A DNA stretch of 63,614 nt, filler included, from Perkinsus chesapeaki ATCC PRA-425 (lineage: Eukaryota; Protista; Perkinsozoa): assembly GCA_013115145.1 (NCBI GenBank). It is 10 parts of 10 records of this genome, joined end to end, with 100 filler letters (N's around TTAATTAATTAA, not from the genome) between each part and the next. Parts side by side here need not be neighbours in the genome. Positions count along the whole stretch, not along the records: positions 47,585 to 59,622 come from JAAPAO010000828.1; 9 more parts are not named here. The stretch is one strand, 5' to 3'. Below the pieces are notes generated by a model. It saw only the letters and a list, made by a program, of their open reading frames with translations. It searched no databases and was not told where the DNA came from. Of the stretch, positions 6,315-59,724 are shown piece after piece. Every line of letters begins with the position of its first letter. The stretch's first letter is position 1. Made by a program: the position numbers and the translations under genes.

Positions 6315-6450
6315 TAGCGAGAAGTCCGAAGGTGTAAGACATCACTCCTGCGGAGTTTAGATCGCCTTTTGAAAACACATAAAGGACCTCCTCCACTGTG
6401 AAGCTCCTAGTGGCTAAACCAACCTTAAACTCAATGATACATCGGATGCT

Positions 6451-8116
6451 TCACAGAAGCCGCTGACTCATCCCAACATGCGTTATTTTAGCATTATCAG
6501 ACCTCGCTCGACGGCTCACTCCAGGATATCGAATCACAGGCCTTCTGCTGCCGCTGGCGCCTCTTTCCTCCCACAGGATGCCTTGCCCAGGCCGATGGAC
6601 GCTATAGCGATCAAACGAACGATCGGTGTTCCGGCCACAACGCTGGGCCGGAACTCCTTTTACGCGCAGCGTGGAGCTCTTGGAACGGAGTTCATTGGCT
6701 TCGTCATTTGAGCCTCCGGTAGTCTCGGCCTTTGACCCGTTCTTTTTAATGCGCTTGGATCCCTCATATAAATGTTTCCTAGTTGCATGTCTCGCTTCAC
6801 TGTTCACCACTTCGCTCTTCGCGGGCTCGGAGACCTTGCTTTCTGCGACTTGCTGCCTCGCCAACTCCGGAGTAGTTGCTCGGCGAATCTCCGAAGTGAC
6901 ATTGCTGTCCTCTAGGTACTCAGGGCGAGGTTGCCGCAATGGCAAGTCCCCTGATCAGAGGTGAACCGCTAAACGACCAAACGTTCTCAGGTCACCGCTC
7001 AGTAACTGCGGAGCTCTGCGGTCCACCAAAGCTCGTTCCTCTCGTGTCAGTGTGGCCCTTTGTCCTTCTGTGGCCGCCTGAGTTGTCAATAATGAATAGA
7101 CTTCACTAACAGTGTTAACTTGGTAGATTAAGAGACATGACAATATCGATGAGACCGACTTGTTTCAAAAGGATCTCTAACTTTCCGATGAGCCTTCGCT
7201 GCCGCCGATTCAGCTCTTGAACGTACCTAAGTATCACTTCGGACTGTACAACAATTTCTACTAACTTAGTTCGGAGTTCACTCCTTGCTTGATGTCGGCC
7301 ATATGCAGCAAGATGCCCTGAACGTATCAGATCTCTGTGTAGTGGTTCGTCGCTGAAGGGGCACATTGTTGGTTGCACCACGGAGGTGAGGTAAACTATC
7401 GTCTCACTTGTTCGCCAGTCCATCCAACCATTCTTGTCTCTCATGCTCGGCTGCCAGGGCTGAAGCTCTGGCTGCCTGTAATAGAGCGATCCATCCAGTT
7501 CCAAATGTGATGCGAGATAGGATATCCAAGAATAGGACGACGTGAAGGATTCCTCTATTTACAATCTTGTGCGATCGAATGAAGCAAGTGAGCCGGTTAG
7601 CTCTTAATCTGTGACTCAGGCCGCGCGTAAGGCAAAGCTTACCTGTTCGTTCAGTTCTCTGACGGCCATAGTCTCTCTAATCAGCCTGCTAAGCCGATGT
7701 AGCCGTTGATGGTGAAGCCGTACTCGCGGCTCAGGCTCATTAATTGATACTGTCACCCTCTCCCGAGCTTCATCCTTCTCCACCTAACTGCGGTGCGTCG
7801 GTTTCGTATCTATCAATCGTCCCACATTCTTCAGCTGACCAGCTGGGATCTCCAAGTCTGTAAGGTTCCCTGTGTCGCTGGTATCCTCTTCTTCACCCTT
7901 CGTTCCCGGAGCTCCATGGGCGGTGCCAGTGTCATCGATGCATATATCAATGCGCTGGTGCTCTCGATCAATGTCCAACGCGCTCAGGCGTTGTAGTGCC
8001 TCGGTGAGCCTCAGGTCCTGGTCTCTCAAGTGACTTCTGACTAAAGCTAGCTCCAGCCGTAGTGCAAAGTTCTCTTGGGTGAGCGTCGATATTTCCAGTT
8101 GTGTTCGTCGAGACAT
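6451..8116 (-). CDS. Multi-exon coiled-coil protein
   Basis: ATG at 8116 and heptad-rich N-terminus (EISTLTQENFALRLELALVRSHL). Further exons at about 7140-7500 and 6451-7110 with coiled-coil and low-complexity segments. Confidence 0.45.
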
Positions 8117-13215: not shown

Positions 13216-15550
13216 TTGTCAGTGGGTCAGTGCCTCATATTGCCTGCCGTAGGCAACAGCAGACGGGAATCACTAAGTTCTGTGCAAGAAAAGGCAGTCT
13301 ACTATGTATGATAACAAACACAATTATTACTTTCCCTACTTAACACAACAAAATTGTCCCTAACTATTATTCTAGCTTGTTATAAAGCTTAGTAGTTGTA
13401 CATTTACTAAAGTATGTGGTTAGAAGGAGTTAAACTATTGTTGTTTATTCAAGGTTTTATTCCTATTCGTATAATCACTCCTGTGTAATGTCCAATAATT
13501 CAATATTCAGCGATACCATTCCGAAGCGAAAAGGTGGAGTCGAGTTGGCTAATTCTAGGACAGGTCTGTTGTTCGTTTTCGCGATGCTATGGTCGGCCCA
13601 AATGCTCTATTGCAAAACCTCTTCTCGAAGATGCCCGGGGCTGATCTGGCCTTGCAAGCCAGTTGGCAGGTGGGGTACCCCCTTAAATGACAGCGAGTTG
13701 AGAAAAGATCGATATGAGTTTTCAGAACAATAAGCTCCTCGTTCATCCAGAGCTAGCATTCGTGCCATCAAAGAAGGCAGTTGCAGGCGAGGCGGCTGTA
13801 GGCGCTGCTAAAGTGAGAGGGGGAACATTAACCGTGTCGGTGTTACCGACTTCCTCTCCCAAATCCTTCCTGTTCTGCAGCCAGCCTCCTGTTCTGGGCC
13901 ATGCCAGAGTCCGAGACCTCGCGTAGTTAGCTGAAATCGACTGCTTTGTAGCTGCGGCCCGACTGCCAGTTGTCTAGACTTTCCTCGAAATATACCACCC
14001 TCTTGGGAACAAGCCTCCTCTGCCAAATGACCTTGGGTAAATGTTCTAAATCGGCCTTTTTCGGAGAGCATAAAATTGCCTGACGTGTGCGATGGATGAC
14101 ATTTGCCCGAAGAGCCCAATGCGCGCTTCTTATATGGTTGATCGTACACTTCACAGGAGGTAAGAAAATCAGCCAAAATAATAATTGAAGAAAAATGAGT
14201 TCTCAAGCTCCCATGAAGCTCTTTGGAGGAACCCCCACTAGCCGCATACGTTGGTTAACATTGAGGCTCCATCTTTCTTAAGATGATCAGTGGCCGGCGG
14301 CCATTGGCCGCGGTCGAGCAGCGGACCATGGTTGCCCTGTCATTGTTGGGTAGTGGTACTCCTTCTAGAGCAACCTCGCGTAAGACACACGACTCGTGTT
14401 ACATGAGGGCTCTATCAGAAGTTTCTATGTGACATGCCAAGCCTCTTCCACTGGACGTATGTTTGCTTTGGAAACAATACTTTGGGTCTTTTGCCGCTAT
14501 TAACACCCGATGTAATACCTAAAGTGTATGAGAGCAGGCCACGAGGTGGCTGGATGCGCGCCAGTAAAACCGTTTGGACTTAGTCCAACTCTGCGGCCAA
14601 CAGGCATCCGCGGAGCTGCCCAAAATGGTTCTTGCCAGTGTGCTTCCATACGAATTCCGGCTGAAGCGCACGACGGACGAGTGTTTTCAAAGTGTTGTTT
14701 TGCTCTCAATTAATCTGTGTACGAGGCAGGTTACTCCTACTAGGTACGCTGCGGGTCTCTGCTGGGGATTCTGTCAGAGCCGCTGGCGATAATTACTAGG
14801 CAATTCCGCTTGTACATGAAATAGGAAGGACATGCTTAGAAATCCTGTGCAAAAAGTACGGTTTATACAACCTTGTTAATGGGTATTCTGGATGGGTCAG
14901 TGGCGGGCTAAGAAACAAGCAAGGCCCAGCTAAATCACTGACACTATTACTCGCAATAAGATTCCCACCAGGGAGCGTGACACCGAATCCGGTGCGCCTG
15001 CATTCTTAAACGACATGTGGACCAGTCTGGATTTCACTTCGTAAGTTTTGACCTGTTTCGAATCGAATCGCTTGGCGAAAAATACAACCGATATTACAAA
15101 TTTGATCATATAGTCACTACATTACCGAACACTGTTCGAGATTCATTACCTCACTATTGGTGCCGGGCGCTTTTGCGCTCCATGAAAAGGATGAAGGATC
15201 ACTGGATAACGAGTCTTGTGAAGGCAAGATAAATGCGAAATGCAGGTGTATATTGTATGGCTATTCAATGGAGTTATTATGCCCCAATATCAGCTGATTT
15301 TCCAGTTACTTCTGGTCTCCATGAAAAGGTTTCTGTTAACCAACAAATCAAAATGCTACCACGCTATTGCTCCCCCCTTTCATTTCTCGCGCCGTATGTC
15401 TGAACCACGGCCACAGCATTTCAGTATGGGCTACACATTTTGTTTGTTGATTTCCCACTTCCCGAGCGTGTTTCCGTGAGCGAGAAATCAACCTTGCCGC
15501 AAATGATTCTGTTAGCCAGGCTAGCCTAGCCTTTACGTACTTCTTCTCCC

Positions 15551-47484: not shown

Positions 47485-47822
47485 NNNNNNNNNNNNNNNN
47501 NNNNNNNNNNNNNNNNNNNNNNNNNNNNTTAATTAATTAANNNNNNNNNNNNNNNNNNNNNNNNNNNNNNNNNNNNNNNNNNNNTCAAACAGTGGTGGAT
47601 GGTGTGGACAAGTATTTGGTAGAGCAAGGTTATAGAAGCTATCGTAAGGCCATTCGACGTGGTGCTTCTATTCGTTCGGATCTCGTCAAGCGTTTTCTGT
47701 CTATTGAATCCCGTCGCGTATTGGTTGACCGATGGGAGAATCAAGCGTGAATTACAGAATTATGCTGGGACATCAAGCGTGAAGGCTTTGATCAATTTTT
47801 CCTTCGGTTTGATTACACTAGA

Positions 47823-50800
47823 ATGGCTCTGGATGCTCAACGAGGTGCGCCGTTTACTAAAGAAGACGTTGCTGACCGTTTATTTAATAGCTTTCCTGAT
47901 GATCTTTGTGAAGACATACTACGTCGTTTCCGTAATTCTCCATCTTTGGAGGAATTGAAAGAAGCAGCTGAGCGCCATAATGCAGTATTACAACGTCGTG
48001 CTGTCCATGGTCGACAATCTAGACAATCTGCTGTTGATGTTATTAATGAAAATACTGCCTTGACAATGCCTGTTGACTCGGAGACGACTACTGGTGAGGC
48101 TACGGCGCAAACCAACTGCCGTCTTTTTATGAGCAATTTACGGTATGATGTTAGTGAAAAACAAGTGTTAGAAGCTCTTAGAAGTATCTTGAAACTGTCT
48201 GGTGTATCTCCTACTTCGGTCCGTCTTTTCCGTGACCGGAATTCTCCAGGTCGAAATCGTGGTATTGGTATAATCGAGTTTCGTGACCCTACTAGCGCCA
48301 CTAATGCCCTGTCATCTATCGATGGTAAAGCTGTTTTAGGACGTACATTACGTGTTCGCCGTGACAGTCCTGCTGCTAAACGTCGCCATACTGAAGAATC
48401 TGCCCAACCTACAACACCCATAGTTGCTGAAACTATTATTTCCTCTGGTGCTCCTGATACTCCAATGCCTGCTGCATCGACCCCCTCTCCACAAGCCCAA
48501 GCTGGTGGTCAACAAGATTCGACTGTCTCCCCAACAAGTGTGTGCTTGACGAATGAGAACCCTAGTTTGGTAGCTTCTTTAACGGAATCATTCTCTTTAA
48601 TGTCCAATGATGATGCTGTCCCTGTGGAAGTCCATTTGGACAAACTAATGAGATCTAGTCAGGTTGGACGGCATTCTACTGGTACGCTTACTGATATTTC
48701 AGCAGCTGTTCAATTAGCTGATGGCTCGTCGCATACTGTGCAATGGTTACTTGATAGCGGTGCGGCAGAGCATTTGGTTTCAGCTACAGTTGGTAACTTG
48801 TTGGTGGACTCACCATCTGTAAATCTCGCTCGCCCGGTGACACTCCTTTTCGCTAATGGCCAACAACAGAAGGTTGATGTAGCGCGCAGGGTGACTCTTC
48901 GTATTGGAAATGACTGTTATAATACTACAGTTCTTGTTGTTGATGGTTTAACACTTCCTGGAGTCTTGAGCCTTCATAAATTGGCTAAGGATGCGGGTTC
49001 TTTATCGTGGTTTATGTGTCCAGATGGTAGCGAATTATTGCAATTGGGACTTTCGAATGTGTTGAAACTTACTTCCCAAAATATCGCTTTGAATGCGAGC
49101 TGCCCCGTTTTTGTTGCCTTGTCTGATAGTGATGATAGCGATGATGTCAAATCTTTAAGAATGGCACTATCACCAATCGAACGTTGTGGAGAACATCATA
49201 ATGTTATACTGGCTAAGAATAAGGACAGTGATGATAATGAAGATGAAGAGAAGGCTGAGATCAAATTGGATTATGTTGTTGGCGATGACGGTAGTAAACG
49301 AGCCCGCGTTTCTTTGCCATGGCTGTCCTCAGCGAGGCCATCACCTACTGATAGAGGCTTGGGTAGGAATGCTTCTATCGCTAGGGATGTAGCCAACTGC
49401 CGACGCCTTCGTGAAATGGGTAGTACTTGGTTCGATGACTTTGAGAAGGAGTTGTTAGATATGCAAGATAAAGGTTATATTCGCCCACTAACGGCGGCAG
49501 AAGTGGCAGAAAACTTACCTGTGGCTAGTGTTGTCTTGGCATTACGTCCTGGACATAAGACCCAACCGGTGCGTATTACGATTGATGCGCGAGGAGTCAA
49601 TGCTCATTTGGACTCAGGCGATGTTAGTCTGCTCCGGAAGGCTCTTAAGACTATTCTTCTTCGTTGTCGACTTTCTCCACTGGCAGCATTCGAGGATGTG
49701 GCGCGGGCGTTCCCCCAACTGGTCCTGCATTTGCCTGATACCGTCAGCCTCAATTTTAGATGTAGTAATCGCTATTGGCGATGTATGCGATTACCCTTCG
49801 GCCTAACCTGCTCACCGGCATGTTTATGTATTGCTCTGCAGGATATCCGGTCTATCCTAATCTGTAACTATGGATCTACTACTGAAGCCTATTTTCCATA
49901 TATGGACGATTTACTATATACGGGTTGGTCCAGGTCGGTTCTTTCACAACGGCGTGAACGTGGAAGGAGTCTGCTACTTTCTCAGGCCAGCATGCATTGC
50001 CAGCCAGCCAAAAGCATTGAGTTTTCCGACCCAACCCTTAGGGAAGAGCCAGATTTCTCACATGTGAGTACGCAAGGTAGCTCTGTAGCACCTGATAGCT
50101 TGGTTGTTGATTCTCAGAAGCCTACTTCTACTGTACAACTTGGTTATGTTTGGTCTATTTCGGAGGATACTGTTACTGTGCAAAGGCCAGAAGCCAGTAA
50201 AGCTCCGACCACTCGTCGTGTTGCTTTTAAGCAGCTGTCCAAACTGTATGATCCTTTAGGCTTGTATATAGAGGTAGTGGCAAAGCAACGACTGTTACTG
50301 AGCCTTGCATCTAGTAATACCCAGTCTTGGGATACGACTGATATTGGGGAGGAACTTTCTCAGGCTATATGCAATTTTATACCGTCATCGTTACCACCAG
50401 TACCTCGATTTTGCGATCTGCGTCAAGGTCTTGTTATCTTTTGCGACGCAGCCGGTAATGGTTGTATCTGTTGTGATGCTCGTGGTGTAGCAGATGGACG
50501 CAGACTTACTGCTTATCAGGCTACTCTTAATCCAAAATGGTCGGTAGCAAGGCTGGAATTATGTGCATTGGTTGCTGGTAGCAAAATGTTACAAGAAGTT
50601 CTTCAACAGCGAGATGTAGTACTGGACAGCGGCACTAATATCCCTGACGTGTGGATTTGTACCGATTCTCAGTTAAATGCTTGGAGAATTAGGCGAAATT
50701 CCCGCTTTGATGAAAAATATCTCCCATTATTCGAGCGTCGACGAGTTCATTTACTTCGAACTTCCTTGTCAGCATTGGCTTCTGAGACTTCTATTCCTAT

Positions 50801-51803
50801 CCACTTAGCTCATATCCCAGGGCGGGAGAATCCTGCGGATAGGGGTACCAGACCATCTATTGACATGAATAGTGAGGTGATGAGTATGAATGGTGATGAT
50901 ATGCGATCTGTTCTTCAGAAAGTATCTGTGGTATCGACATATTCATCAACCAGCGAAGAAGATGACTGTTTCGATGAGTTTGATGCCGGCGACACTACTG
51001 AAGAAGAGCTATGTGTCTCATTCGTGGGAGCCATATCTACTCTCAAGAAAAGCATTTGTGACATTGTGCTGGATGACGAGTTGCTCAATTCTGTTCGCAT
51101 AGCTCAGGAGTTTTCCCCGCAAATTAATGAGCTACGTCAGAAAACTTCTTTGGATTTTCTTGGTTATGTGGTACAAGACGGTTTACTTCGTCGAGTTGGT
51201 AGTGTTGCACTAGACGATTCGAATCGTGGTAGCTGTGTCATTTCTCAGATTGTAGTCCCTGATGATAGAAGGGACTTGCAAATGGAGATTGTCAAGTATT
51301 TCCATGATTGGCATGGTGGACATCCCGGACGAACTGCTCTTATCCGCTGGATCTGGCGTCATTTTTATTGGAAGCAGTTAGACCAACGAGTTAGATCCTT
51401 TAATCGTAACTGCCTTGGTTGTCAAGCTAGGCAACAAGCAGCGACAAGAAGACGCGTCATGTCGTCTAGACCCCCTGCGTGTCCGGTTCGTTTTGGTCCA
51501 TTTGGTATCGTATATTTTGATAGTAGCGGTCCTTACCAATTCGTTTGTTCTGACGACGGTCACAGCAAATCTGGGAAACACTATGTATTCTCTGTGGTCT
51601 GCCAAGCTACTCGATTTATTCGCGTAGTAGCTTCTCCGGATAAGTCGGCTAAAGGAGCCGCACAGGCATTGTATCAACTACTTACTGAAGAAGGCCGACC
51701 AAATTTGGTAGTGGTTGACCAAGCTTTATGTACACCTGTCGTTGCAGCTGTGGTCAAGGATTTTGGTGGGTTACTCCTTCCCGCTCCACCTCGTGGCGAA
51801 TAA
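47823..51803 (+). CDS. Gag(RRM)-PR-RT-RNaseH-IN(partial) polyprotein, 1326 aa
   Basis: Uninterrupted ATG ORF ending at a TAA just before the integrase catalytic Glu. Confidence 0.85.
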   Translation: MALDAQRGAPFTKEDVADRLFNSFPDDLCEDILRRFRNSPSLEELKEAAERHNAVLQRRAVHGRQSRQSAVDVINENTALTMPVDSETTTGEATAQTNCRLFMSNLRYDVSEKQVLEALRSILKLSGVSPTSVRLFRDRNSPGRNRGIGIIEFRDPTSATNALSSIDGKAVLGRTLRVRRDSPAAKRRHTEESAQPTTPIVAETIISSGAPDTPMPAASTPSPQAQAGGQQDSTVSPTSVCLTNENPSLVASLTESFSLMSNDDAVPVEVHLDKLMRSSQVGRHSTGTLTDISAAVQLADGSSHTVQWLLDSGAAEHLVSATVGNLLVDSPSVNLARPVTLLFANGQQQKVDVARRVTLRIGNDCYNTTVLVVDGLTLPGVLSLHKLAKDAGSLSWFMCPDGSELLQLGLSNVLKLTSQNIALNASCPVFVALSDSDDSDDVKSLRMALSPIERCGEHHNVILAKNKDSDDNEDEEKAEIKLDYVVGDDGSKRARVSLPWLSSARPSPTDRGLGRNASIARDVANCRRLREMGSTWFDDFEKELLDMQDKGYIRPLTAAEVAENLPVASVVLALRPGHKTQPVRITIDARGVNAHLDSGDVSLLRKALKTILLRCRLSPLAAFEDVARAFPQLVLHLPDTVSLNFRCSNRYWRCMRLPFGLTCSPACLCIALQDIRSILICNYGSTTEAYFPYMDDLLYTGWSRSVLSQRRERGRSLLLSQASMHCQPAKSIEFSDPTLREEPDFSHVSTQGSSVAPDSLVVDSQKPTSTVQLGYVWSISEDTVTVQRPEASKAPTTRRVAFKQLSKLYDPLGLYIEVVAKQRLLLSLASSNTQSWDTTDIGEELSQAICNFIPSSLPPVPRFCDLRQGLVIFCDAAGNGCICCDARGVADGRRLTAYQATLNPKWSVARLELCALVAGSKMLQEVLQQRDVVLDSGTNIPDVWICTDSQLNAWRIRRNSRFDEKYLPLFERRRVHLLRTSLSALASETSIPIHLAHIPGRENPADRGTRPSIDMNSEVMSMNGDDMRSVLQKVSVVSTYSSTSEEDDCFDEFDAGDTTEEELCVSFVGAISTLKKSICDIVLDDELLNSVRIAQEFSPQINELRQKTSLDFLGYVVQDGLLRRVGSVALDDSNRGSCVISQIVVPDDRRDLQMEIVKYFHDWHGGHPGRTALIRWIWRHFYWKQLDQRVRSFNRNCLGCQARQQAATRRRVMSSRPPACPVRFGPFGIVYFDSSGPYQFVCSDDGHSKSGKHYVFSVVCQATRFIRVVASPDKSAKGAAQALYQLLTEEGRPNLVVVDQALCTPVVAAVVKDFGGLLLPAPPRGE

Positions 51804-52451
51804 TTACGTGGTTGGGGCGAACGCCCACACAAGGACTTGCACGCCATCTTGCGAGGAGCGTTATATGATTTTAGGACTCAGAACAAGCTGCCTACTGAGA
51901 CTGAATTCTTGCGCCTATTGTATCGTGCTGCTATGGTGGTTAATATGACTCCATTCGTAGATAACAGCCCGTTGTGTCCATTTATTCTCTGCAGGGGTCA
52001 TGATCGTCTTCTGGGTGATCCCAATGCAGCTGGTGATGCTGAATCTGTCAGACAAGCAGTGTATGATGGGTAACAACCTCCAGTCTGGTGGTCTGAACTT
52101 GATGCAGATGACTATGCGACTAAGTTAGCAGAAGGGCGCACTATCGCTCTTAGCGAGATGTCTGATATATGGTGGTTGAAGCGTAGAGCTGTGCGTGAGA
52201 AGTTGTTAGGCCGCGCATTGAGGAGAGCTGGTCGAGATCTACGCGAAGGCGCATGTGGTTTCCGATGGAGACCACAACTTGGCCCTTTCGGCAAATTGAA
52301 CACTGGCTGGGAACCAGTGACTCTGATCAAGAAGAAGAGTGATAGCGTCTGGCGTGTCAAGTTAGGAGATGGCAAAGAAGCTGATTAAGCTGTACTCAAT
52401 CTTCGTATTGTTGACTGACCATTTATGCAATCAACGGCGTCCCGCCGGGAG

Positions 52452-52588
52452 TGTGCCGGATACGGCAAAGTTTTGTGTAATGTCATCTTAACACAGTATC
52501 TTTTTTAGCTCTGTCTCCGGACGCTAGAATACCAAGTCTGGACACCATAATCTTAGTGTGTTTTTCTTATCACTACTTGGTAATTACA
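52452..52588 (+). repeat. Putative 3' LTR (TGT...ACA, about 137 bp)
   Basis: Follows the ORF end and a purine-rich CCGGGAG tract. The 5' LTR is not available for confirmation. Confidence 0.45.
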
Positions 52589-52611
52589 GTGTTACTCAAT
52601 TACCATCACAA

Positions 52612-53635
52612 CCTCTACCTCACCCCTCCCACTTCCCTCTAGGTCGGCCATCGCCACACACAGTTCGGCCTGACACCTCAGCCTCACAGAGTCACCCCTC
52701 CGCACAGACCAGAACAAGAGAAGTCATAGGCGGGATCTAGACAGCTTCACTCTCGGACTGAACGGCAAGCTAATCCGGGTCCCTCAGGACATGCCCAAGC
52801 CCGAATTGACCCTCTACCTCACCCTGCACTTCCCTCTAGGTCGGCCATCGCCACACACAGTTCGGTCTGACACCTCTAGCCCCACAGCTCAGTTGCTTGG
52901 CGCGATGCGGTGATCTGGAATCATAGGCGAAAGCAAATTCCCAGTTTGCGAAGGCAACCGCAAAGCGGAGTGACTGGGATCACTCAGAACAGGACTCGAT
53001 ATCTTAGCACGAATACGTCTCGAGGAACGCTTCCTAACCTTGGTTATTCTCTCACTCGAGATGATACGATTCGGTAAGTCTATATCCTTATTGGAACTCT
53101 TGCCGCTACGTGTCAACACCATAGTTACTAGTGAACACAATGCCTAACTCTATAGACAATTGCCGTAACCAGACCTTCAACTACGTTACTAGCGTACGAA
53201 GTATAACCACTAGCGGCTAGTAAACCTCAACACAGTCTACTAACTTAAGCTGTAGCCTAAGTCCCAGGCTAGTAAGAACCAGAAGCTCAACTCACTCCTG
53301 TCCTTAATCTAACCTAATGTGGCACGAGGCAAGCGCCTGCGCGGGGGCCTTAGCACGCATGCACAAATATGTGACGCCATCAGTGTCACGGCGCACAATA
53401 CAATAGCAGTAATAACAGAGTAATACCGTCGAGTATAAACACCGAAAAATCGTACAATGGTTCACGAGTCTCCGTACACTGCGCTGGAGCGCACATCTTG
53501 CAGGGCTAGGGAGCTAATCCGGGTCCTTCAGGACATGTCCAAGCCCGAATGGAACCTCCACCTAATCCTTCACTTACCTCTAGGTCGGCCATTGCCACTC
53601 ACAGTTCGGTCTACCCTGCCTGCAGGGCTAGGGAG
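52612..53635 (+). repeat. Three copies of a roughly 70-110-bp repeat (52612-52679, 52770-52870, 53514-53620)
   Basis: Shared core CTCTAGGTCGGCCATyGCCACwCACAGTTCGG. The third copy is flanked by a 15-bp direct repeat TGCAGGGCTAGGGAG (53499-53513 and 53621-53635). Confidence 0.8.
52889..53122 (-). CDS. Short basic ORF starting MVLTRSGK, possibly a TE Gag-like N-terminal remnant
   Basis: ATG at 53122, Arg/Ser-rich; sits among repeats. Confidence 0.2.
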   Translation of the reverse strand: MVLTRSGKSSNKDIDLPNRIISSERITKVRKRSSRRIRAKISSPVLSDPSHSALRLPSQTGNLLSPMIPDHRIAPSN

Positions 53636-53696
53636 AGCTTTGGGGGCGCGAGAAAAAAACTGCCCAATGCAAGAAAAAAGTTGACGCGCGCATGAA

Positions 53697-53723
53697 AATA
53701 TGCTTGCCTTCGGCAAGCATATT
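53697..53723. promoter_or_regulatory. 12-bp-stem hairpin upstream of the SPFH gene
   Basis: AATATGCTTGCC-TTC-GGCAAGCATATT, about 160 nt 5' of the ATG at 53881. Confidence 0.35.
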
Positions 53724-53880
53724 CCAGCCTCCCTTGAGAACTTACAGTTTCCTTATTGGTTTCGTGCCCGGTAGATCGCGCTCGCCCAAATAGGGAACCC
53801 GAAGGATGACCCGAATCCGGTCTCCTCCTCCTTCTCTTGGTGCTGTAACTCCCTTCAGTACTCTAACATCCCTTTACCCT

Positions 53881-55850
53881 ATGGGTTGCGTCCAAACCGT
53901 TCCCAACGATCGTGTTGCCGTAATCACTCGGTAGGCCTGGCCTGTAAAATTCACGCGCCACACAATTGTCATTCCAGGTTCGGAAAGTTTGACAGGCTCG
54001 CTCACCCCGGTCTCCTATGCCTCCCTATTCCTTGTATATGCGTTAGAGCTGGGGATGTGTCGGTGAGAATTCAGGAAACATCGATGACTTGCGAAACGAA
54101 AACTAAAGACAATGTTTTCGTCAGTATACAAGTGATGCCTCGATCGCAGATGGCTCCAAGTTGAGCTCAAGATACTTTTAGGTTGCAGTTCAATACGAAG
54201 TTATCAAGTCTAAGATTTACGAAGCCTTTTATCGCCTTCATAACCCTACGGTCCAGATCAACTCCTATGTCTTCGATGTTGTGAGGTCCACCGTTCCCTG
54301 CATGCTGCTGGATGACGTATTCGAGTCCAAGGATGAGGTCAGTCTCTCAGCGAGTCCTTTGAAATGCCAGAGTTAAAAAGCGAACCTTGTTGAATTCATA
54401 CCCGGTTGTAGTTCTCCTTCCTTATCAATTCTTCGATAGAATGAATTTGCGGGGGTCTCCATGATAGACCACCTTCAAGGCTTATCAAAAGGCGTAGCCC
54501 CGAGGTGTTCAATAATAACCGCTCCGAGCCCGACGGTTTCATCCGAGTTCGTTGTCCGACTGTTCATAAACCTTCCCCATAGTGTTTTCTTCCAGGTCGC
54601 CAAGCAAGTGAAGGACCAGCTGCAGAAAATTATGAGTGAATTCGGGTTCCAAATCAATCAAGCTCTTGTGACCGATATCTCCCCGAATCGTAAAGTCAGA
54701 GATGCCATGAACGAGATTAACGCCAATCGCAGGCTAAGGTACGTTCGAATAGCAGCCTCTCAGTTTGTGAATGAAGGGCTTTAGAGTTGCTGCCACTGAG
54801 AAGGCTGAGGCTGAGAAAGTGGTGATTGTTAAGCAAGCTGAAGCAGAAGCCGAGTCCAAGTACCTTCAGGGTCAAGGTAGGAGAGAATCCAGCGGTCGAC
54901 CATACTTTGCGGGTGTCTTTAATTTCGATGATTGGTCCGACTTGTACTACTCTGACGGCATACTACTATTTCCATGACGCAAGCTCGTCTGCCCGTGGTG
55001 GTCATCATCAAGAGTTTCACTAACTGCTTCTAAAAGACCAACATTATTATTGATGTGAATTAATTATTAGCCTGGTAAAATGTGGCCCCCCTCTGGTGAA
55101 GAGCGTCTTCTTGAATTCACTCATATTTGGCGTGTGTACTATTTGAAAATTCGATTAAAAGTCAAGAAAGTGCTTTCATACGATAAGATCTTCTAGGTGT
55201 GGCTCGTCAGCGTAAGGCTATTGTAGATGGTTTAAGGGAGTCAGTGGGGGATTTTCAAGAGGCTATTCATGAGATGTCTGCTAAGGACGTATTGGAATTG
55301 GTAATACGAACGGGACGAGGAAGTATGTATCTTGTGACGATAGTAACACCCAAGAGCTTAGAGTTGCTTGCGCGGCTTTTGCATTTAAATGGGGGATGCT
55401 GTATGAGACTGATACGTTTCAGTGTCCAGGAGGAGCAAAACCGATGTGGTGGCATTCTTTGTCTTGACTAGGATCGCCAAGCATGATATATTCGATATCC
55501 TTGGTGGAGAGGCAAAGGAGTCTGAAAAGACTATCACCTAAAAGCTTGGAATTTGTTATTCACAATGCCGCCTAACTAGTCTTTTTTGGCCTCGGAAAAG
55601 TGTAAAACTATCGCTCGCGCAGATTGGCTGGGCCGTTTGTTTGCATATTCGCCGAAACAGTTTTCTGACTTTTTCGAGTGTCTGTTTGTATTTGTTTATT
55701 CAGGTTCTTGTTACTCAGTACTTTGATACTTTGAAGGAGGTCGGAAGTTCCTCAAAGGCGAATACAGTGTTTGTGAGCACTTCACAAAAGGGTGTCACCG
55801 ATGAGATCAAGATGGGGGTGATGCAAGCTAGAGCTGGTTCTGGTCTGTAG
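53881..55850 (+). CDS. SPFH/band-7 protein, hypersensitive-induced-reaction (HIR)-like, 7 exons
   Basis: Spliced translation MGCVQTVPNDRVAVITR|FGKFDRLAHPGL...ETKTKDNVFVSIQ|VAVQYEV...YVFDVVRSTVP...FESKDE|...VTDISPN..VRDAMNEINANRRLR|VAATEKAEAEK...AEAESKYLQGQG|VARQRKAIVDGLRESV...|VLVTQYFDTLKEVG; all introns GT-AG. Confidence 0.92.
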
Positions 55851-57234
55851 GGTGTCTGCGCAGTATGGAAGATACGCAGCACACTTAAACGTGGAATGTC
55901 TTTCACAGTACGAGTAGTAGTTGTCATTGTAAACGCAGCATTGGTATCACGACGATGACGTCTGCTGAAGAAAAATTGAATCAGCTTTTTTAATTGGCTA
56001 AGTGCTTTGTGTTACGCTAGTTACAGAAGGAAAGAAAAAGACAAGGAATGCGCTTAATGTGTCTACACCTATTACATCTCACAAGTCCATCATTATCTCC
56101 ATGTACTGTCGGAAAGAGCAACAGGGAACGAGATACTTTATGAACTATGATATATCTGACACCTACGAGCCGTATCCTATATACTGATATCCTCATCACG
56201 GTAATGGTGTCGTTGTAATAAATTCTACATCGCTCGGTAGAAGGTTCAGGTTAGGTGACGTCACACATATTCCTTGGAGATACTTTGTGTCCCTCCGTTA
56301 CTTACTGAATACGATATAGCTTTTCTCGTGCTTTTTCTCAGCTGACCAACTCCTCCGAGAAATTATATTATCATTCTCTTCGAGCTTCTCCTCCTCGTTC
56401 ATTAAATGCTGACAAGTCGATGGCTTCTTACAGCGCGGAGGATACCGGCGGCAGCATTCTTCGGGAACTTGACTCACAGTAGGAAATTTGACGGTTTAAC
56501 TCTGACCGGGAGGACTGCCAGACTTGACATTCGCGCTGTTATGGTACGCTTGAGCCTGAATGTGTTATTTGCGATTCTCTTCATCATCATCAGCCTGCTC
56601 TGGAAGAAGGTTTTGATGGTGGAGTGAACGTGGCGAAGGAAGGGAAAATTAAATGGACGTTCACCGAGAATAACTCCAATGAGAGTAAGAAGATGACATT
56701 GGTTTGTAGCCGCATATCTGGATGTTTGCAACCGTCATGGTTTACATTATTGGCCGCTCTGGAACCGCGCGGTAATCTACTGTGTTCCTGCTTTATCTAG
56801 ACGGAAACCCTTATGAGGGAAATTTGTGTGCTGCTGATGTCCCTTGAAACAAGGGATGAATTGAAGTAAAATTCACTAAACTACTCACCCGTTAAATTCT
56901 GAATTTAGTGCGTACCCAAACATCCACTTAGTGAATGTTCAGCTCACTGTTGCCGCGTTAGTGACCCAAACAGTGTTTGGCACACATCAAGGGCCTCGAG
57001 GTCAATAACGTCGTATCGACAATGTTGTTGTCTTAATCGGCTTACTGTGTATCTTTCTGTCACACATTGCTTGTCTTCTATCGTATCCCAGGGCGGAGGA
57101 TTCTTCCCATCGCAGGTTTGATTAATCTTCCATATACATGCATTAACCATCTCTATACATAGTAGCTACACCCTTCTATGATATAAGCTCTCAGGTATAA
57201 CAGTTACCCTTCCACCAGCGACAATTGGGTCACT

Positions 57235-57836
57235 AATGCAGGCAACAACTTCAACAAAGCTATCTCTGGGTACGAAAGCAGCCGGACCTCCGAAGCATAT
57301 TCGTGGAGAGTTATCTCAGACTCGGTATTTCTATTAGGCACCTACTGGAAGATGCCGGAATACGCCCATCCGAATCTGCCAGCGAAGATCGAGATCGAGC
57401 CGTCTCTAGAGGAGAACACAGTTTTAATTTCAATCAGTCAGACTGCAGGCGCGGAGGTGAGTAGGTGTGGAAACTCACTTGCTGCTAATTGTGCTGCTTT
57501 CAGATGGACCATCACGAGGCTAAACGAATATCGGTCGAAGTGGGTCCCGGAGATCTCAAAGGAATTCAAATAGTTATGCAATCGGTAAACAGAACCGTCA
57601 GTTATACCGAAACACAGCTGCGAAAAACCTTTGAAGCGGTCGACAGTTTTTACCCTAAAGACTCGGCTTTCGTTTCGGCACCTCGCCGTCTAAGTGCCTC
57701 GTATTCGAGCACGTTCACCGGGGAGGGAATTCTGACAGAGATCCAGTGGTTGTTCTTAATAACCGTCCAGTGTTTGAGTCTCTTAGATGCTTCCTTATCT
57801 TTACGGATGGACGCTCATTCCCGTCGATGTCGGTGA
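57235..57836 (+). CDS. Hypothetical gene with at least two exons
   Basis: An exon ending QTAGAE|GTGAGT, spliced at TTTCAG|ATGGAC to ORF 57502-57836. Confidence 0.35.
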
Positions 57837-58971
57837 GAAGTGGGGAGAGACCAAGCAAAGGGGATACAGCGTAAAAAGTACCTCGCGTTTGGAGAATCGA
57901 GTTCTATTCAGGTCGGTCAGCGTCCGACGAGTCCTTCCCAATCTGGTGGTCCGAGCGCTGATGACTTCTTCGACTGAATGTTCATCGAAATGTGGTTGTC
58001 TTATTCATCGAGTTCCGGGAAGTTTCGACCACCTTGCAGCTTTCTTCGATGTTGAGTTTTTGCATCCTCGAATATCTTATCCGGTAGACTGTAACTACCG
58101 CTGGTGTTTGCCGCATGTGAGGTGAAACTCTCCTGTTGGAGGTGTCCCATCTATTAACCCGACTCGAACAACTAACAATTCCCGACCTCGCCGGTACCTC
58201 ACCCGGTCCAGACCTTCACTGATTTGTTTGATGACTTATCAAACGTTCCTCTATTCGACCGCTTAGAGACTCCAAGTTGGCGTATCCCTTCAGAAACGTA
58301 GATTAGATGGAATGACGGCCGAGCAGACACAGCCGATCAGCGATCGCCCTCGATGGCCTTCGTAAGGGGGGTCGGAGGTCTCTCGACCGCTAAATGGTCC
58401 GATCTTATCACACTTCGAGCAGAGCTTTCGAACCCCTCATCGTTAATCCGGTAACCCGGAGGGCGAGACCTTACACCACCATAACGTGAACTCAACAGCT
58501 GGTTCATGTATAATATGAAGCGAGACTGAAAACCTTGCTAATGCTCGTTACAGATATGAGCGCGCCACGCAGCAACTTATGAGGAGTACACCGCGATGAA
58601 TCAAGACTTATAATTAACATGGTACTTCACTAGCAGCAATCAATGCAGTTAGCCTTGCATCTTAGAAAGTGAAGGAAGCAGGGGGGTAATGCCAGCCCTC
58701 CATTGCCACAGGCTCTACAGAAACCGCAGTCACTTTTTTGTCGAGCTGCCTGATTCTGCTAGGGTTGCTATCAGACAATGTCGTGTAGCATAAACAAAGT
58801 AGTAAGTAGTAGAGTATGGTATGTTTGAGTAGGCTTGGTGACATACTGAAATTGTTACTAACAAATGAAAGATGAATACTAGGTAAACAAGAGATGATAA
58901 AACCTTCCGGAAATGTGGGAAGACTTACCAATCTCTATGCAGCTACCCTCATAGCTCATAGCTACATGTGT

Positions 58972-58993
58972 GGGAGTAGCTATAGCTACTCCC
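58972..58993. repeat. Perfect 22-bp palindrome
   Basis: GGGAGTAGCTA|TAGCTACTCCC. Confidence 0.8.
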
Positions 58994-59724
58994 GCATGGT
59001 ATGGCTCCAGCGTTCTCTCTAGCATGCTTTCTGCAGATGGCCGTCTGCCATCATCACCATAAGCTGTACTACTGCTTCTACAGCTGCAGAGCCATAGTCT
59101 AAGTCAGCCATGAATCAATGTACCATTGCCATTGGAATCGGTTTAACTGAATACCATCGCGGGAAGTGAGGTTTCCTCAACTCCCTCCCTCGCGCGTGCG
59201 TGTTGAACACGCCGTTCGTGAAGAGCTGAATCGGTTATATTGTTAAGAAGTGCATAACGTCTGTAATATATAGTCTATTTATTGGCATAGGCCACGATAT
59301 TCCATGCCATGGAATCCATGGGCAATAGTTCGATATCACCTCAGGTACTTTACCTGTGCTAGGATTCCAGTATAGCTTAGTCAGTGTACAGTGCGAACCA
59401 AACCGTTATGCAAATTCGTCTTCTTGGTATAACTTTTTTAATCTTACGACTTAGAACATGAAACTTGGAAGATAGCATGATGGTAACAGTTAAGAATAAA
59501 TTTTATAATATCATGCCCGTTTCTGGCTTTCAATTGCATCTGGGGGAGAGATGTGCGTCTGCGTGCAGATGTACGCATACACAAACACCATAGATTAAGG
59601 ATCATCTCAACCCTTACTGTTGNNNNNNNNNNNNNNNNNNNNNNNNNNNNNNNNNNNNNNNNNNNNTTAATTAATTAANNNNNNNNNNNNNNNNNNNNNN
59701 NNNNNNNNNNNNNNNNNNNNNNGC

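Follow-up and report, generated by a model that had tools for sequence, protein, structure and literature searches.

An RNA-recognition motif at the nucleocapsid position of Gag in a BEL/Pao-like retrotransposon family of Perkinsus

Introduction

In retroviruses and LTR retrotransposons, the nucleocapsid usually consists of an array of CCHC zinc knuckles and, rarely, of a plain basic region. RNA-recognition motifs (RRMs) occur in the ORF1 proteins of non-LTR elements, LINE-1 and others (Khazina and Weichenrieder 2009, cited in PMC5563155; also PMC4120745). Among LTR retroelements, the metaviruses of vertebrates (Gypsy-12_DR, for example) and the domesticated PNMA proteins have an RBD-capsid-NC architecture (PMC10516033/PMC11011659; PMC10945824). 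BEL/Pao elements have been described as metazoan-only (PMC3118150), and new protein domains are considered to become fixed in LTR elements only rarely (PMC9289625). Here, we describe a Perkinsus-specific family of BEL/Pao-like elements that carries an RRM between Gag and protease. Our reading, to which we assign a probability of roughly 0.7, is that this RRM and the basic tail behind it, standing at the knuckle position, form a nucleic-acid-binding module that replaces the nucleocapsid.

Results

The window (the whole stretch of DNA that was analyzed, 63,614 nucleotides, along which all positions are counted) includes a 12-kb contig of Perkinsus chesapeaki holding one copy of the element, truncated on its 5' side at the contig edge. 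A single reading frame (47586-52388; natural stop, 52386-52388) leads from Gag through the RRM to PR-RT-RNase H-IN. The initial annotation had spoken of a 1326-aa ORF, which is indeed listed as 47823-51803; the true frame is the longer one, and its whole-frame translation contains in-frame stops at 47748, 51801 and 52071. The window copy is mutationally dead. Two frameshifts at the integrase end were considered and ruled out, the same translation showing in-frame stops only. Database searches were made with uninterrupted stretches of sequence; for local sequence comparisons, reading continued through the 47748 stop, which was given as X. The features of the copy outside the RRM region are as follows.

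47586..48110, + strand: C-terminal part of Gag (65-88% amino acid identity to Gag of other family copies)
47739..47756, + strand: 18-nt in-frame insertion with a TGA stop (47748-47750), missing in L001 and L003 (tblastn alignments)
~47787-48008, + strand: four-helix, capsid-CTD-like bundle (AlphaFold2 helices 13-86, pLDDT 71-86)
48396..48677, + strand: variable acidic linker between RRM and protease, Ser/Thr/Pro-rich, pI 4.2 (14-39% amino acid identity between copies, dN/dS 0.36-0.79)
48678..49025, + strand: aspartic protease (weak Pfam Asp_protease_2 match, ORF residues 304-382)
49263..50210, + strand: reverse transcriptase, Y-M-D-D at 49899-49910 (Pfam RVT_1, weak here; copy alignments)
50211..50621, + strand: Pao-specific signature Peptidase_A17 (PF05380) at the RT/RNase H connection (36.4 bits; cut-off, 22.3)
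50427..50855, + strand: RNase H-like region, from motif order only (D/E/D-containing conserved blocks in alignments), without a Pfam match of its own
51270..51434, + strand: Integrase H2C2 zinc-binding domain (PF17921; 43.6 bits; cut-off, 25.5)
51435..52388, + strand: integrase core and C-terminus, collinear with the ORF of the intact P. olseni element, with stops at 51801-51803 and 52071-52073 (frame translation)
52447..52451, + strand: polypurine-tract-like GGGAG directly 5' of the 3' LTR, the same pentamer preceding the 3' LTR of L004
52452..52610, + strand: 3' LTR, 159 nt, TG...CA, 88% identical to L003 532-693; the 5' LTR lies past the contig edge

In L003, the matching segment sits upstream of Gag, with a conserved PBS-like 12-mer behind it; the tRNA-Arg(ACG) genes adjoining L005 show no complementarity to this 12-mer. 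The D-S-G motif of the protease (48753-48761) is conserved in all copies. The assignment to BEL/Pao, made initially from the sequence, was supported to the extent of a BEL/Pao-like element by the Peptidase_A17 and Integrase_H2C2 matches, the PR-RT-RH-IN order and the LTR. PF05380 was likewise found in all of the nearest homologues, in the family proteins P0160 and P0162 and in the scanned relatives outside the clade. The Pfam domains that the initial annotation expected were largely recovered, with RRM_1, Peptidase_A17 and Integrase_H2C2 above cut-off and the reverse transcriptase (RVT_1) weak in the window copy, compared with E 7.8e-6 in an intact copy. The Pao Gag and protease models DUF1759 and DUF1758 had no match in the Pfam scan of the element, and pol identity to the closest elements beyond the clade is only 23-31%.

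A Gag model of the intact copy was searched with Foldseek; the top matches were retroviral and retrotransposon CA-CTDs (MOAP1, PEG10, HIV, Ty3, Ty1 and Arc), and nearly all matches were to capsid C-terminal domains, at non-significant E-values (0.3-2) and with a model of low confidence (mean pLDDT 50). The helical bundle upstream of the RRM may accordingly be read as a capsid C-terminal domain, an assignment that is suggestive only. From the piece edge to the protease, which includes four Cys, neither a C-x2-C-x3-5-H-x3-6-C knuckle nor any looser Cys/His pattern was present, and no other candidate nucleocapsid module was seen in the Gag-to-protease stretch of the window. CCHC knuckles were also absent from residues 1-650 of the intact L004 ORF, which hold a complete Gag, and from each of the seven family loci that hold the junction. 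BLASTP with Gag picked up no similarity to a Pao-like element of P. marinus that carries CCHC knuckles. Translation and the pattern scan agree with the initial description, in which an in-frame RRM, with no knuckle, separates Gag from the DSG protease. By domain order, the RRM lies between the capsid-CTD-like region (the suggestive assignment above) and the protease, which is the nucleocapsid position.

The RRM had been annotated as complete, with both RNP motifs and a closing LGRTLRVRRD, and all of these were recovered exactly where they had been placed, in the frame beginning at 47586.

48120..48365, + strand: RRM domain (Pfam RRM_1, AlphaFold2 topology, Foldseek, PDB profile search)
48123-48140, + strand: RNP2, LFMSNL, within the RRM
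48258-48281, + strand: RNP1, RGIGIIEF, within the RRM
48336-48365, + strand: LGRTLRVRRD, end of the RRM
48366..48395, + strand: basic tail after the RRM (family alignment; charge/pI)

The excised segment matched Pfam RRM_1 (PF00076) with 42.6 bits (E 5.5e-11; gathering cut-off, 20.7) at ORF residues 101-177, covering the whole model (1-70 of 70), and RRM_1 also exceeded the gathering score in P0160 and P0162. AlphaFold2 gave 48120-48362 (model residues 124-204) the order strand-helix-strand-strand-helix-strand (beta1-alpha1-beta2-beta3-alpha2-beta4; pLDDT 60-80). With E<=0.001 as the limit, Foldseek against the PDB returned at least 500 matches, all of them RRMs among the matches listed, headed by hnRNP A18/CIRBP (TM 0.75) and with TM up to 0.75-0.85 among RRM matches. 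A profile search of PDB sequences gave 188 matches, of which 60 out of 60 among the matches listed were RRM proteins. The best sequence and fold matches were of the CIRBP (5tbx, with E 1.6e-12 and TM 0.75), Hu, PABP and nucleolin types. The initial annotation had named hnRNP-M/Gbp-like proteins as typical host carriers of RRMs; in the PDB profile search and Foldseek, the RRM is generic and nearest to the CIRBP, Hu and PABP types, not specifically of the hnRNP-M/Gbp kind.

In RRMs, positions 3 and 5 of RNP1 are usually aromatic and stack on RNA bases, and an aromatic at RNP2 position 2 is likewise exposed. In the family alignment, every copy has an aliphatic residue (Ile, Leu or Val) at both of these RNP1 positions; canonical RNA binding by the beta-sheet may therefore be weakened. 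The RNP2 Phe is kept across copies except L008 (Leu), and the RNP1 Arg-Gly is kept in most. The tail has a K-R-R patch at 48378-48389 (KRRR in other copies; K90, R91 and R92 invariant), and RRM plus tail have a pI of 11.6-11.8 with 16-21 Lys+Arg per ~92 aa (six copies; window copy pI, 11.6).

The aliphatic RNP1 positions, together with the invariant KRR(R) patch (a possible nuclear localization signal or the true RNA-binding element), are what a rather improbable alternative would draw on. On that account, the RRM is under selection as a protein-interaction or host-mimicry (UHM-like) domain, recruiting, for example, host RNA-processing, export or nuclear-import factors, and not as an RNA-packaging module; nucleic acid would be bound by the flanking basic patch only. 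Ty1 Gag, which lacks knuckles, offers a parallel for binding by a basic patch. An RRM-like Gag domain of unidentified function also lies outside the capsid in metaviruses and PNMA (PMC10516033, section 10; PMC10945824). Against this, an aliphatic RNP1 position 3 is also found in some RNA-binding RRMs of the PDB alignments, most copies retain the RNP2 aromatic and the RNP1 Arg, and the RRMs of CIRBP, Hu, PABP and nucleolin, which match best, are genuine RNA binders. The domain, moreover, sits exactly at the nucleocapsid site, for which no other candidate was found, and a nucleic-acid-binding module remains our preferred reading.

The initial annotation had contrasted its proposal with an RRM inserted into one copy, knuckles in other copies or a published description of such elements; all three were examined, and none was found. 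Word-index searches with the whole ORF, and with Gag-RRM scored against long proteins, had suggested a singleton, returning the element's own protein and pol relatives of 21-23% identity only, a reading overturned by a short Gag+RRM query and by opening the clusters from an exhaustive pol search. The RRM occupies the same Gag/protease junction in 7/7 independent loci that hold it, in P. chesapeaki, P. marinus and P. olseni and including the intact element; these loci (the window copy and six further) are a sample of the genomes. The Gag-RRM-PR arrangement was found in P. marinus at L001, L002 (as an RRM remnant) and L005 and in P. olseni at L004, L006/L007 and L008. A metagenome scan with the Gag+RRM profile gave no match.

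BEL/Pao target-site duplications are short (4-6 bp). L004 (P. olseni) has an uninterrupted 1841-aa ORF and LTRs that are 100% identical with TG..CA ends, and it is flanked on both ends by GGAG, a probable 4-bp target duplication that overlaps the PPT-like GGGAG. Taken together, L004 and L005 have LTR pairs of 99-100% identity, with the RRM inside the pair in both. At least one RRM-bearing element looks recently active, to judge from its sequence.

Public gene models of these loci are unreliable: splicing in P0001 skirts stop codons, P0006 amounts to a 208-aa "RRM protein" and P0162 bears the name "cold-inducible RNA binding protein". Such models could suggest that the RRM is a host gene and its fusion an artifact of nested insertion, assembly chimerism or gene-model read-through. 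That reading is already refuted, and we give it practically no credence. The Gag-RRM-PR-RT-RH-IN frame is continuous in the window and on independent contigs that come from several assemblies and three species, the whole of it lies within the LTR pairs of L004 and L005, and RRM identity follows element identity across copies. These observations support the RRM as a feature of the lineage and not a nested insertion in one copy.

In an RT-RH tree, built with Pao-like sequences only, the RRM-bearing copies form one clade (SH-aLRT 100), for which a single change of state suffices; the RRM was gained once, on the clade stem. Outside the clade, most full-length pol relatives (~60 of them, other Perkinsus Pao-like families included) have one to three CCHC knuckles upstream of pol, in agreement with the initial statement that BEL/Pao Gag normally carries them.

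Amino acid identity between the window copy and L001 (P. marinus) was 0.90 in the RRM, 0.81 in PR, 0.69 in Gag and 0.39 in the linker; between the window copy and L005, it was 0.71 in the RRM and 0.48 in RT-RH. The RRM had a dN of 0.075 against L001 with dS saturated (pS ~0.7), placing it among the best-conserved segments; owing to this synonymous saturation, dN/dS values are rough, and weight was put on relative dN and amino acid identity between segments. Judged by these measures, the RRM is kept under strong purifying selection. Such selection, and the annotation of some copies as stand-alone genes, would also be expected of a Gag-RRM domesticated as a host gene in the manner of PNMA or Arc. 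We consider domestication very unlikely, given that the family is multicopy, with several diverged subfamilies per genome and pol attached in every copy, and that the LTRs of L004 and L005 are 99-100% identical; the many decayed or internally deleted copies (L002, L003 and the window copy) are the pattern of a mobile family.

Discussion

We infer from sequence and position that the RRM could serve as an RNA-packaging/nucleocapsid module. The RRM and its tail, a predicted nucleic-acid-binding module of the element, would bind the genomic RNA that is to be packaged into Gag particles, assist primer annealing and strand transfer as a chaperone, or do both. The RRM would thereby stand in for the nucleocapsid knuckles, convergently with the RRM of LINE ORF1 proteins.

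Capture of the RRM from a host gene is plausible. A metagenome scan with the RRM profile matched only two cellular genes, L010 and L011, each a DEAD-box helicase with an RRM. They show 30-35% identity and a canonical RNP1; they do not belong to the family, and neither is convincing as a donor.

The initial annotation called the architecture unusual for an LTR element. This holds for an RRM in the place of the knuckles but needs qualifying, as RRM-like Gag domains are known N-terminally in metaviruses and PNMA (PMC10516033). The literature search, which left most subscription journals and Repbase Reports outside its range, found no LTR element described with an RRM at its nucleocapsid position and no account of these Perkinsus elements. 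We regard it as an even bet that this is the first recognized LTR-retroelement clade in which a canonical RRM fully replaces the zinc-knuckle nucleocapsid, convergent on LINE ORF1p, still mobile in P. olseni, BEL/Pao-like and in a non-metazoan host.

A swap of knuckles for an RRM that selection has kept in three species offers a natural experiment on the modularity of RNA packaging and chaperoning in capsid-forming retroelements, and it parallels the alternation of RRMs and knuckles among LINE ORF1 proteins. The family adds to the evidence for a diversity of BEL/Pao-like elements in an alveolate, beyond the metazoan range given in the literature.

Copies of the family are labeled "cold-inducible RNA binding protein" (a P. 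marinus copy), "RRM domain-containing protein" or "hypothetical protein", with artifactual introns. Mislabeling of this kind makes the host RNA-binding proteome of Perkinsus look larger than it is.

With BEL/Pao elements (Belpaoviridae), the Perkinsus family shares a single Gag-Pol frame, the PR-RT-RNase H-IN order, PF05380, an H2C2 integrase and short TG..CA LTRs. It differs in having an RRM in the place of CCHC knuckles and in its hosts, the alveolate protists P. chesapeaki, P. marinus and P. olseni.

With LINE ORF1 proteins, the family shares an RNA-binding/chaperone protein of its own based on an RRM, which in some LINE lineages likewise takes the place of CCHC; the analogy that we propose is functional, and nothing points to a common descent of the RRMs. 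LINE ORF1 proteins come without a capsid domain, LTRs, protease or integrase, and L1 ORF1p combines a coiled coil, RRM and CTD, an arrangement not seen in the Perkinsus element.

Cellular single-RRM proteins (CIRBP/glycine-rich RBP, Hu, PABP) are the best sequence and fold matches. The element RRM differs from them in its identity of ~25-30%, the aliphatic residues at the RNP1 aromatic positions, a small insertion in the helix1-strand2 loop and its location inside a polyprotein.

With metaviruses and PNMA, finally, the family shares an LTR-retroelement Gag with an RRM-like fold kept under selection. Their domain is N-terminal to the capsid, recognizable by structure only, situated on the capsid exterior and accompanied by a zinc-knuckle NC and a Ty3/mdg4 pol, whereas the Perkinsus RRM is recognizable by Pfam and lies C-terminal to the capsid-like region, in an element with no knuckles and a Pao-like pol.

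The piece at 47585-59622 is one complete Perkinsus chesapeaki contig (12,038 bp), whose annotated product ("hypothetical protein FOL47_010565, partial") is 100% identical. The BEL/Pao-like LTR retrotransposon it carries at 47586-52610 is a dead copy, with in-frame stops, and a truncated one: the contig ends before reaching its 5' LTR and the N-terminus of Gag. Translation showed that the actual reading frame extends from 47586, at the piece edge, as far as its natural stop (52386-52388); three in-frame stops (47748, 51801, and 52071) interrupt it, and the whole frame is free of frameshifts. The stop at 47748 sits within an 18-nt in-frame insertion that is missing from two other copies (tblastn). 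All pol domains downstream of the RNA-recognition motif (RRM) share its reading frame.

Features of the window element and its downstream flank
47823-51803, +, the one long open reading frame listed (1326 aa, ORF listing)
48120-48365, +, RRM
directly after the RRM, +, basic tail, same frame
after the basic tail, +, variable acidic linker (pI 4.2)
48753-48761, +, aspartic protease, D-S-G motif
49899-49910, +, reverse transcriptase (RT), Y-M-D-D motif
between RT and RNase H-like region, +, Pao-specific signature PF05380 (36.4 bits; cut-off, 22.3)
after the PF05380 signature, +, RNase H-like region, same frame
after the RNase H-like region, +, H2C2 integrase domain (43.6 bits versus 25.5)
after the H2C2 domain, +, integrase core and C-terminus, same frame
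52452-52610, +, 3' LTR (159 nt, TG...CA), preceded by a GGGAG purine run
54461-54784, +, host gene fragment, SPFH/Band 7 domain (Pfam PF01145, 33.4 bits; cut-off, 23.6)

The public gene model of this copy (P0001, 1493 aa) bypasses the stops by introns that look artefactual. Public models of the family (P0001 for the window copy, P0160 for L004, P0006 for L001, P0007 for L002, and P0162 for L005) were unreliable; stop codons were skipped by intron placement, 113 aa of an uninterrupted open reading frame were removed by splicing, some models were truncated, and one copy carries the name cold-inducible RNA-binding protein. An antisense open reading frame of 194 aa (47837-48421, -) opposite the Gag/RRM coding region is probably just a side effect of codon composition.

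The initial annotation had read an RRM between Gag and protease, with RNP2 as LFMSNL (48123-48140) and RNP1 as RGIGIIEF (48258-48281), and frame translation reproduced its coordinates and residues exactly. The Pfam RRM_1 match spans the full model (42.6 bits, E 5.5e-11 for the excised segment; gathering score, 20.7). AlphaFold2 (four-sequence family alignment) predicted a helical bundle, a disordered linker of ~35 residues, and a strand-helix-strand-strand-helix-strand domain (48120-48362, pLDDT 60-80), for which Foldseek returned at least 500 PDB matches at E<=0.001, RRMs throughout among the matches listed, the first being hnRNP A18/CIRBP (TM 0.75). Out of 188 matches of the family profile to PDB sequences, the best 60 were RRM proteins, headed by PABP, nucleolin, HuC/HuD, and CIRBP. 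By these matches, the domain is a generic single RRM, nearer to the CIRBP, Hu, and PABP types than to hnRNP M in particular. From the piece edge to the protease, a pattern search found no CCHC-type or looser Cys/His pattern, and only four cysteines occur there. Pfam, the frame, and this pattern search support the proposed architecture of a Gag with an RRM and without zinc knuckles.

Gag plus RRM as a short query retrieved P. marinus and P. chesapeaki fragments, and more Perkinsus copies came from an exhaustive HMMER search that used the pol part as query and from opening its top clusters. RRM_1 and PF05380 occur together in two of these further copies, a 1728-aa P. olseni protein labelled "RRM domain-containing protein" and a 1117-aa P. 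marinus protein labelled "cold-inducible RNA binding protein, putative". Contigs of the family loci were compared by tblastn. The RRM occupied the identical position, the Gag/protease junction, in every locus retaining that junction (window; P. marinus L001, L002, and L005; P. olseni L004, L006, and L008) and, recurring in three Perkinsus species, is not a one-off insertion. In L002 it lacks ~27 internal residues; L006 and L007 are one element in two assemblies, and L009 begins downstream of the junction. A second P. chesapeaki copy (L003 1387-2422, 88-91% amino acid identity) has an in-frame stop of its own in Gag and an internal deletion that starts shortly upstream of the RRM and ends midway through RT-RNase H, removing the RRM region; it is a deleted derivative, uninformative on the RRM. 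The L004 element looks recently mobile, because a single uninterrupted open reading frame (1841 aa) lies between two 100% identical LTRs; a pattern search of its complete Gag (~400 residues) found no knuckle. The LTRs of L005 are 99% identical. Frames that run on continuously between paired LTRs, and a family that is multi-copy and partly decayed, contradict both an artefactual fusion of RRM and retrotransposon and domestication of a Gag-RRM gene.

The window 3' LTR shares 88% identity with L003 532-693, a stretch 5' of Gag in that contig; a conserved primer-binding-site-like 12-mer comes after it. All loci with a 5' end, the most divergent subfamily included, have this 12-mer, TTCTACCGGGAT, in exact form after the 5' LTR (L003 694-705, L004 726-737, L005 6625-6636, L006 2156-2167, L007 1547-1558, L008 5150-5161); the window copy, missing its 5' end, has no such site. 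The 12-mer does not start with TGG and is therefore not complementary to a tRNA 3' CCA end. The L005 element (LTRs 6446-6627 and 13676-13857) adjoins a tandem tRNA-Arg(ACG) gene array, and an array-unit fragment also lies on its 5' side (array sequences at L005 5690-5829 and 16183-18904), which might reflect insertion into the array or next to it. The 12-mer TTCTACCGGGAT also failed to match these neighbouring tRNA-Arg genes.

Beginning 20 nt past the window 3' LTR, direct repeats of 50-101 nt with 80-98% identity are spaced 197 and 744 nt apart (52630-52679, 52827-52876, and 53571-53620; 52768-52868 and 53512-53612); G+C is higher here (about 0.50). The SPFH/Band 7 gene downstream of the element probably has more exons, to about 55900.

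A maximum-likelihood RT-RNase H tree (32 rows: window, five family loci, and 26 outside relatives) united the RRM-bearing copies in one clade (SH-aLRT 100), on a long stem amid Pao-like relatives with CCHC knuckles. One change of state is enough for the knuckle/RRM distribution, its direction resting on knuckle prevalence outside the clade because the root was not inferred. Among the best 150 pol representatives, about 60 full-length proteins had one to three knuckles upstream of pol, and no match to the family RRM occurred outside the family; Pfam found no RRM in the neighbouring clade of pol-only open reading frames. The closest outside relatives are knuckle-bearing Perkinsus elements (e.g., P0003 and P0018). 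In Nei-Gojobori comparisons, whose dN/dS ratios are rough because synonymous sites are saturated (pS about 0.7), the RRM was the best-conserved segment in two of three: window versus L001 (RRM amino acid identity 0.90, dN 0.075; Gag 0.69, protease 0.81, linker 0.39), versus L005 (RRM 0.71, RT-RNase H 0.48), and versus L004 (RRM 0.53, RT 0.52). Judged from these sequences, the RRM was gained one time and then kept by selection. It may have been captured from a host, as first proposed; a word search among 143-453-aa proteins found no close cellular relative, and two metagenomic RRM-profile matches were ordinary helicase-RRM genes (30-35% identity).

The P. olseni proteins P0016, P0018, and P0168, with their cluster members, belong to another Perkinsus Pao-like family, which bears CCHC knuckles and of which many copies are publicly named "Casein kinase I isoform delta"; Pfam found no kinase domain in P0018, and a single fused gene model is probably the source from which this annotation error spread. 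About 2 kb downstream of the decayed P. marinus family copy, L002 14978-15507 is part of a different Pao-like RT, 33% identical to the window RT.

A K-R-R(-R) patch immediately after the RRM is invariant among aligned copies, and the pI of RRM plus tail is 11.6-11.8 across six copies. Because of this position and charge, and with no other candidate, the RRM and basic tail are most likely the element's nucleic-acid-binding module and nucleocapsid substitute, which would capture genomic RNA and act as chaperone in strand transfer and primer annealing. Against this stands chiefly RNP1, where every copy has Ile, Leu, or Val at positions 3 and 5 in place of the usual aromatic residues; most copies retain the RNP2 Phe and RNP1 Arg. 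The domain might bind RNA in a non-canonical way, or serve protein interaction while the basic patch binds RNA; we consider this rather unlikely. Upstream of the proposed nucleocapsid substitute, the adjoining helical bundle (pLDDT 71-86, AlphaFold2) is suggestive of a capsid C-terminal domain; top Foldseek matches of the L004 Gag model were nearly all such domains (MOAP1, PEG10, HIV-1, Ty3, Ty1, and Arc), at E-values of only 0.3-2 from a poor model, which keeps the assignment tentative.

On the pol side, the family's sequence appears to agree with the definition of BEL/Pao, whereas the CCHC knuckles usually listed for BEL/Pao Gag are absent and the host is Perkinsus rather than the usually listed metazoan. 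Molluscs, which Perkinsus parasitises, are rich in BEL/Pao-like elements. RRMs are well known in non-LTR ORF1 (PMC4120745; references in PMC5563155 and PMC5348765). Full-text searches that did not extend to subscription journals or Repbase Reports found no description of these Perkinsus elements or of an RRM at the nucleocapsid position of any LTR element; family proteins already bear RRM labels assigned automatically in public databases. Among LTR-element Gag proteins, the closest precedent found for an RRM-type fold comes from some vertebrate metaviruses and the PNMA genes derived from them, with their "RBD-capsid-NC" architecture; the domain there has no known function and, unlike the Perkinsus domain, is N-terminal, recognised by structure only, and found alongside knuckles (PMC10516033 section 10; PMC10945824). 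De la Chaux and Wagner state that BEL/Pao elements occur in metazoan genomes only (PMC3118150); several distinct BEL/Pao-like families, all with PF05380, nevertheless exist in the alveolate Perkinsus (window 47586-52610 and L001-L009; P0003, P0016-P0018, and P0024-P0026).
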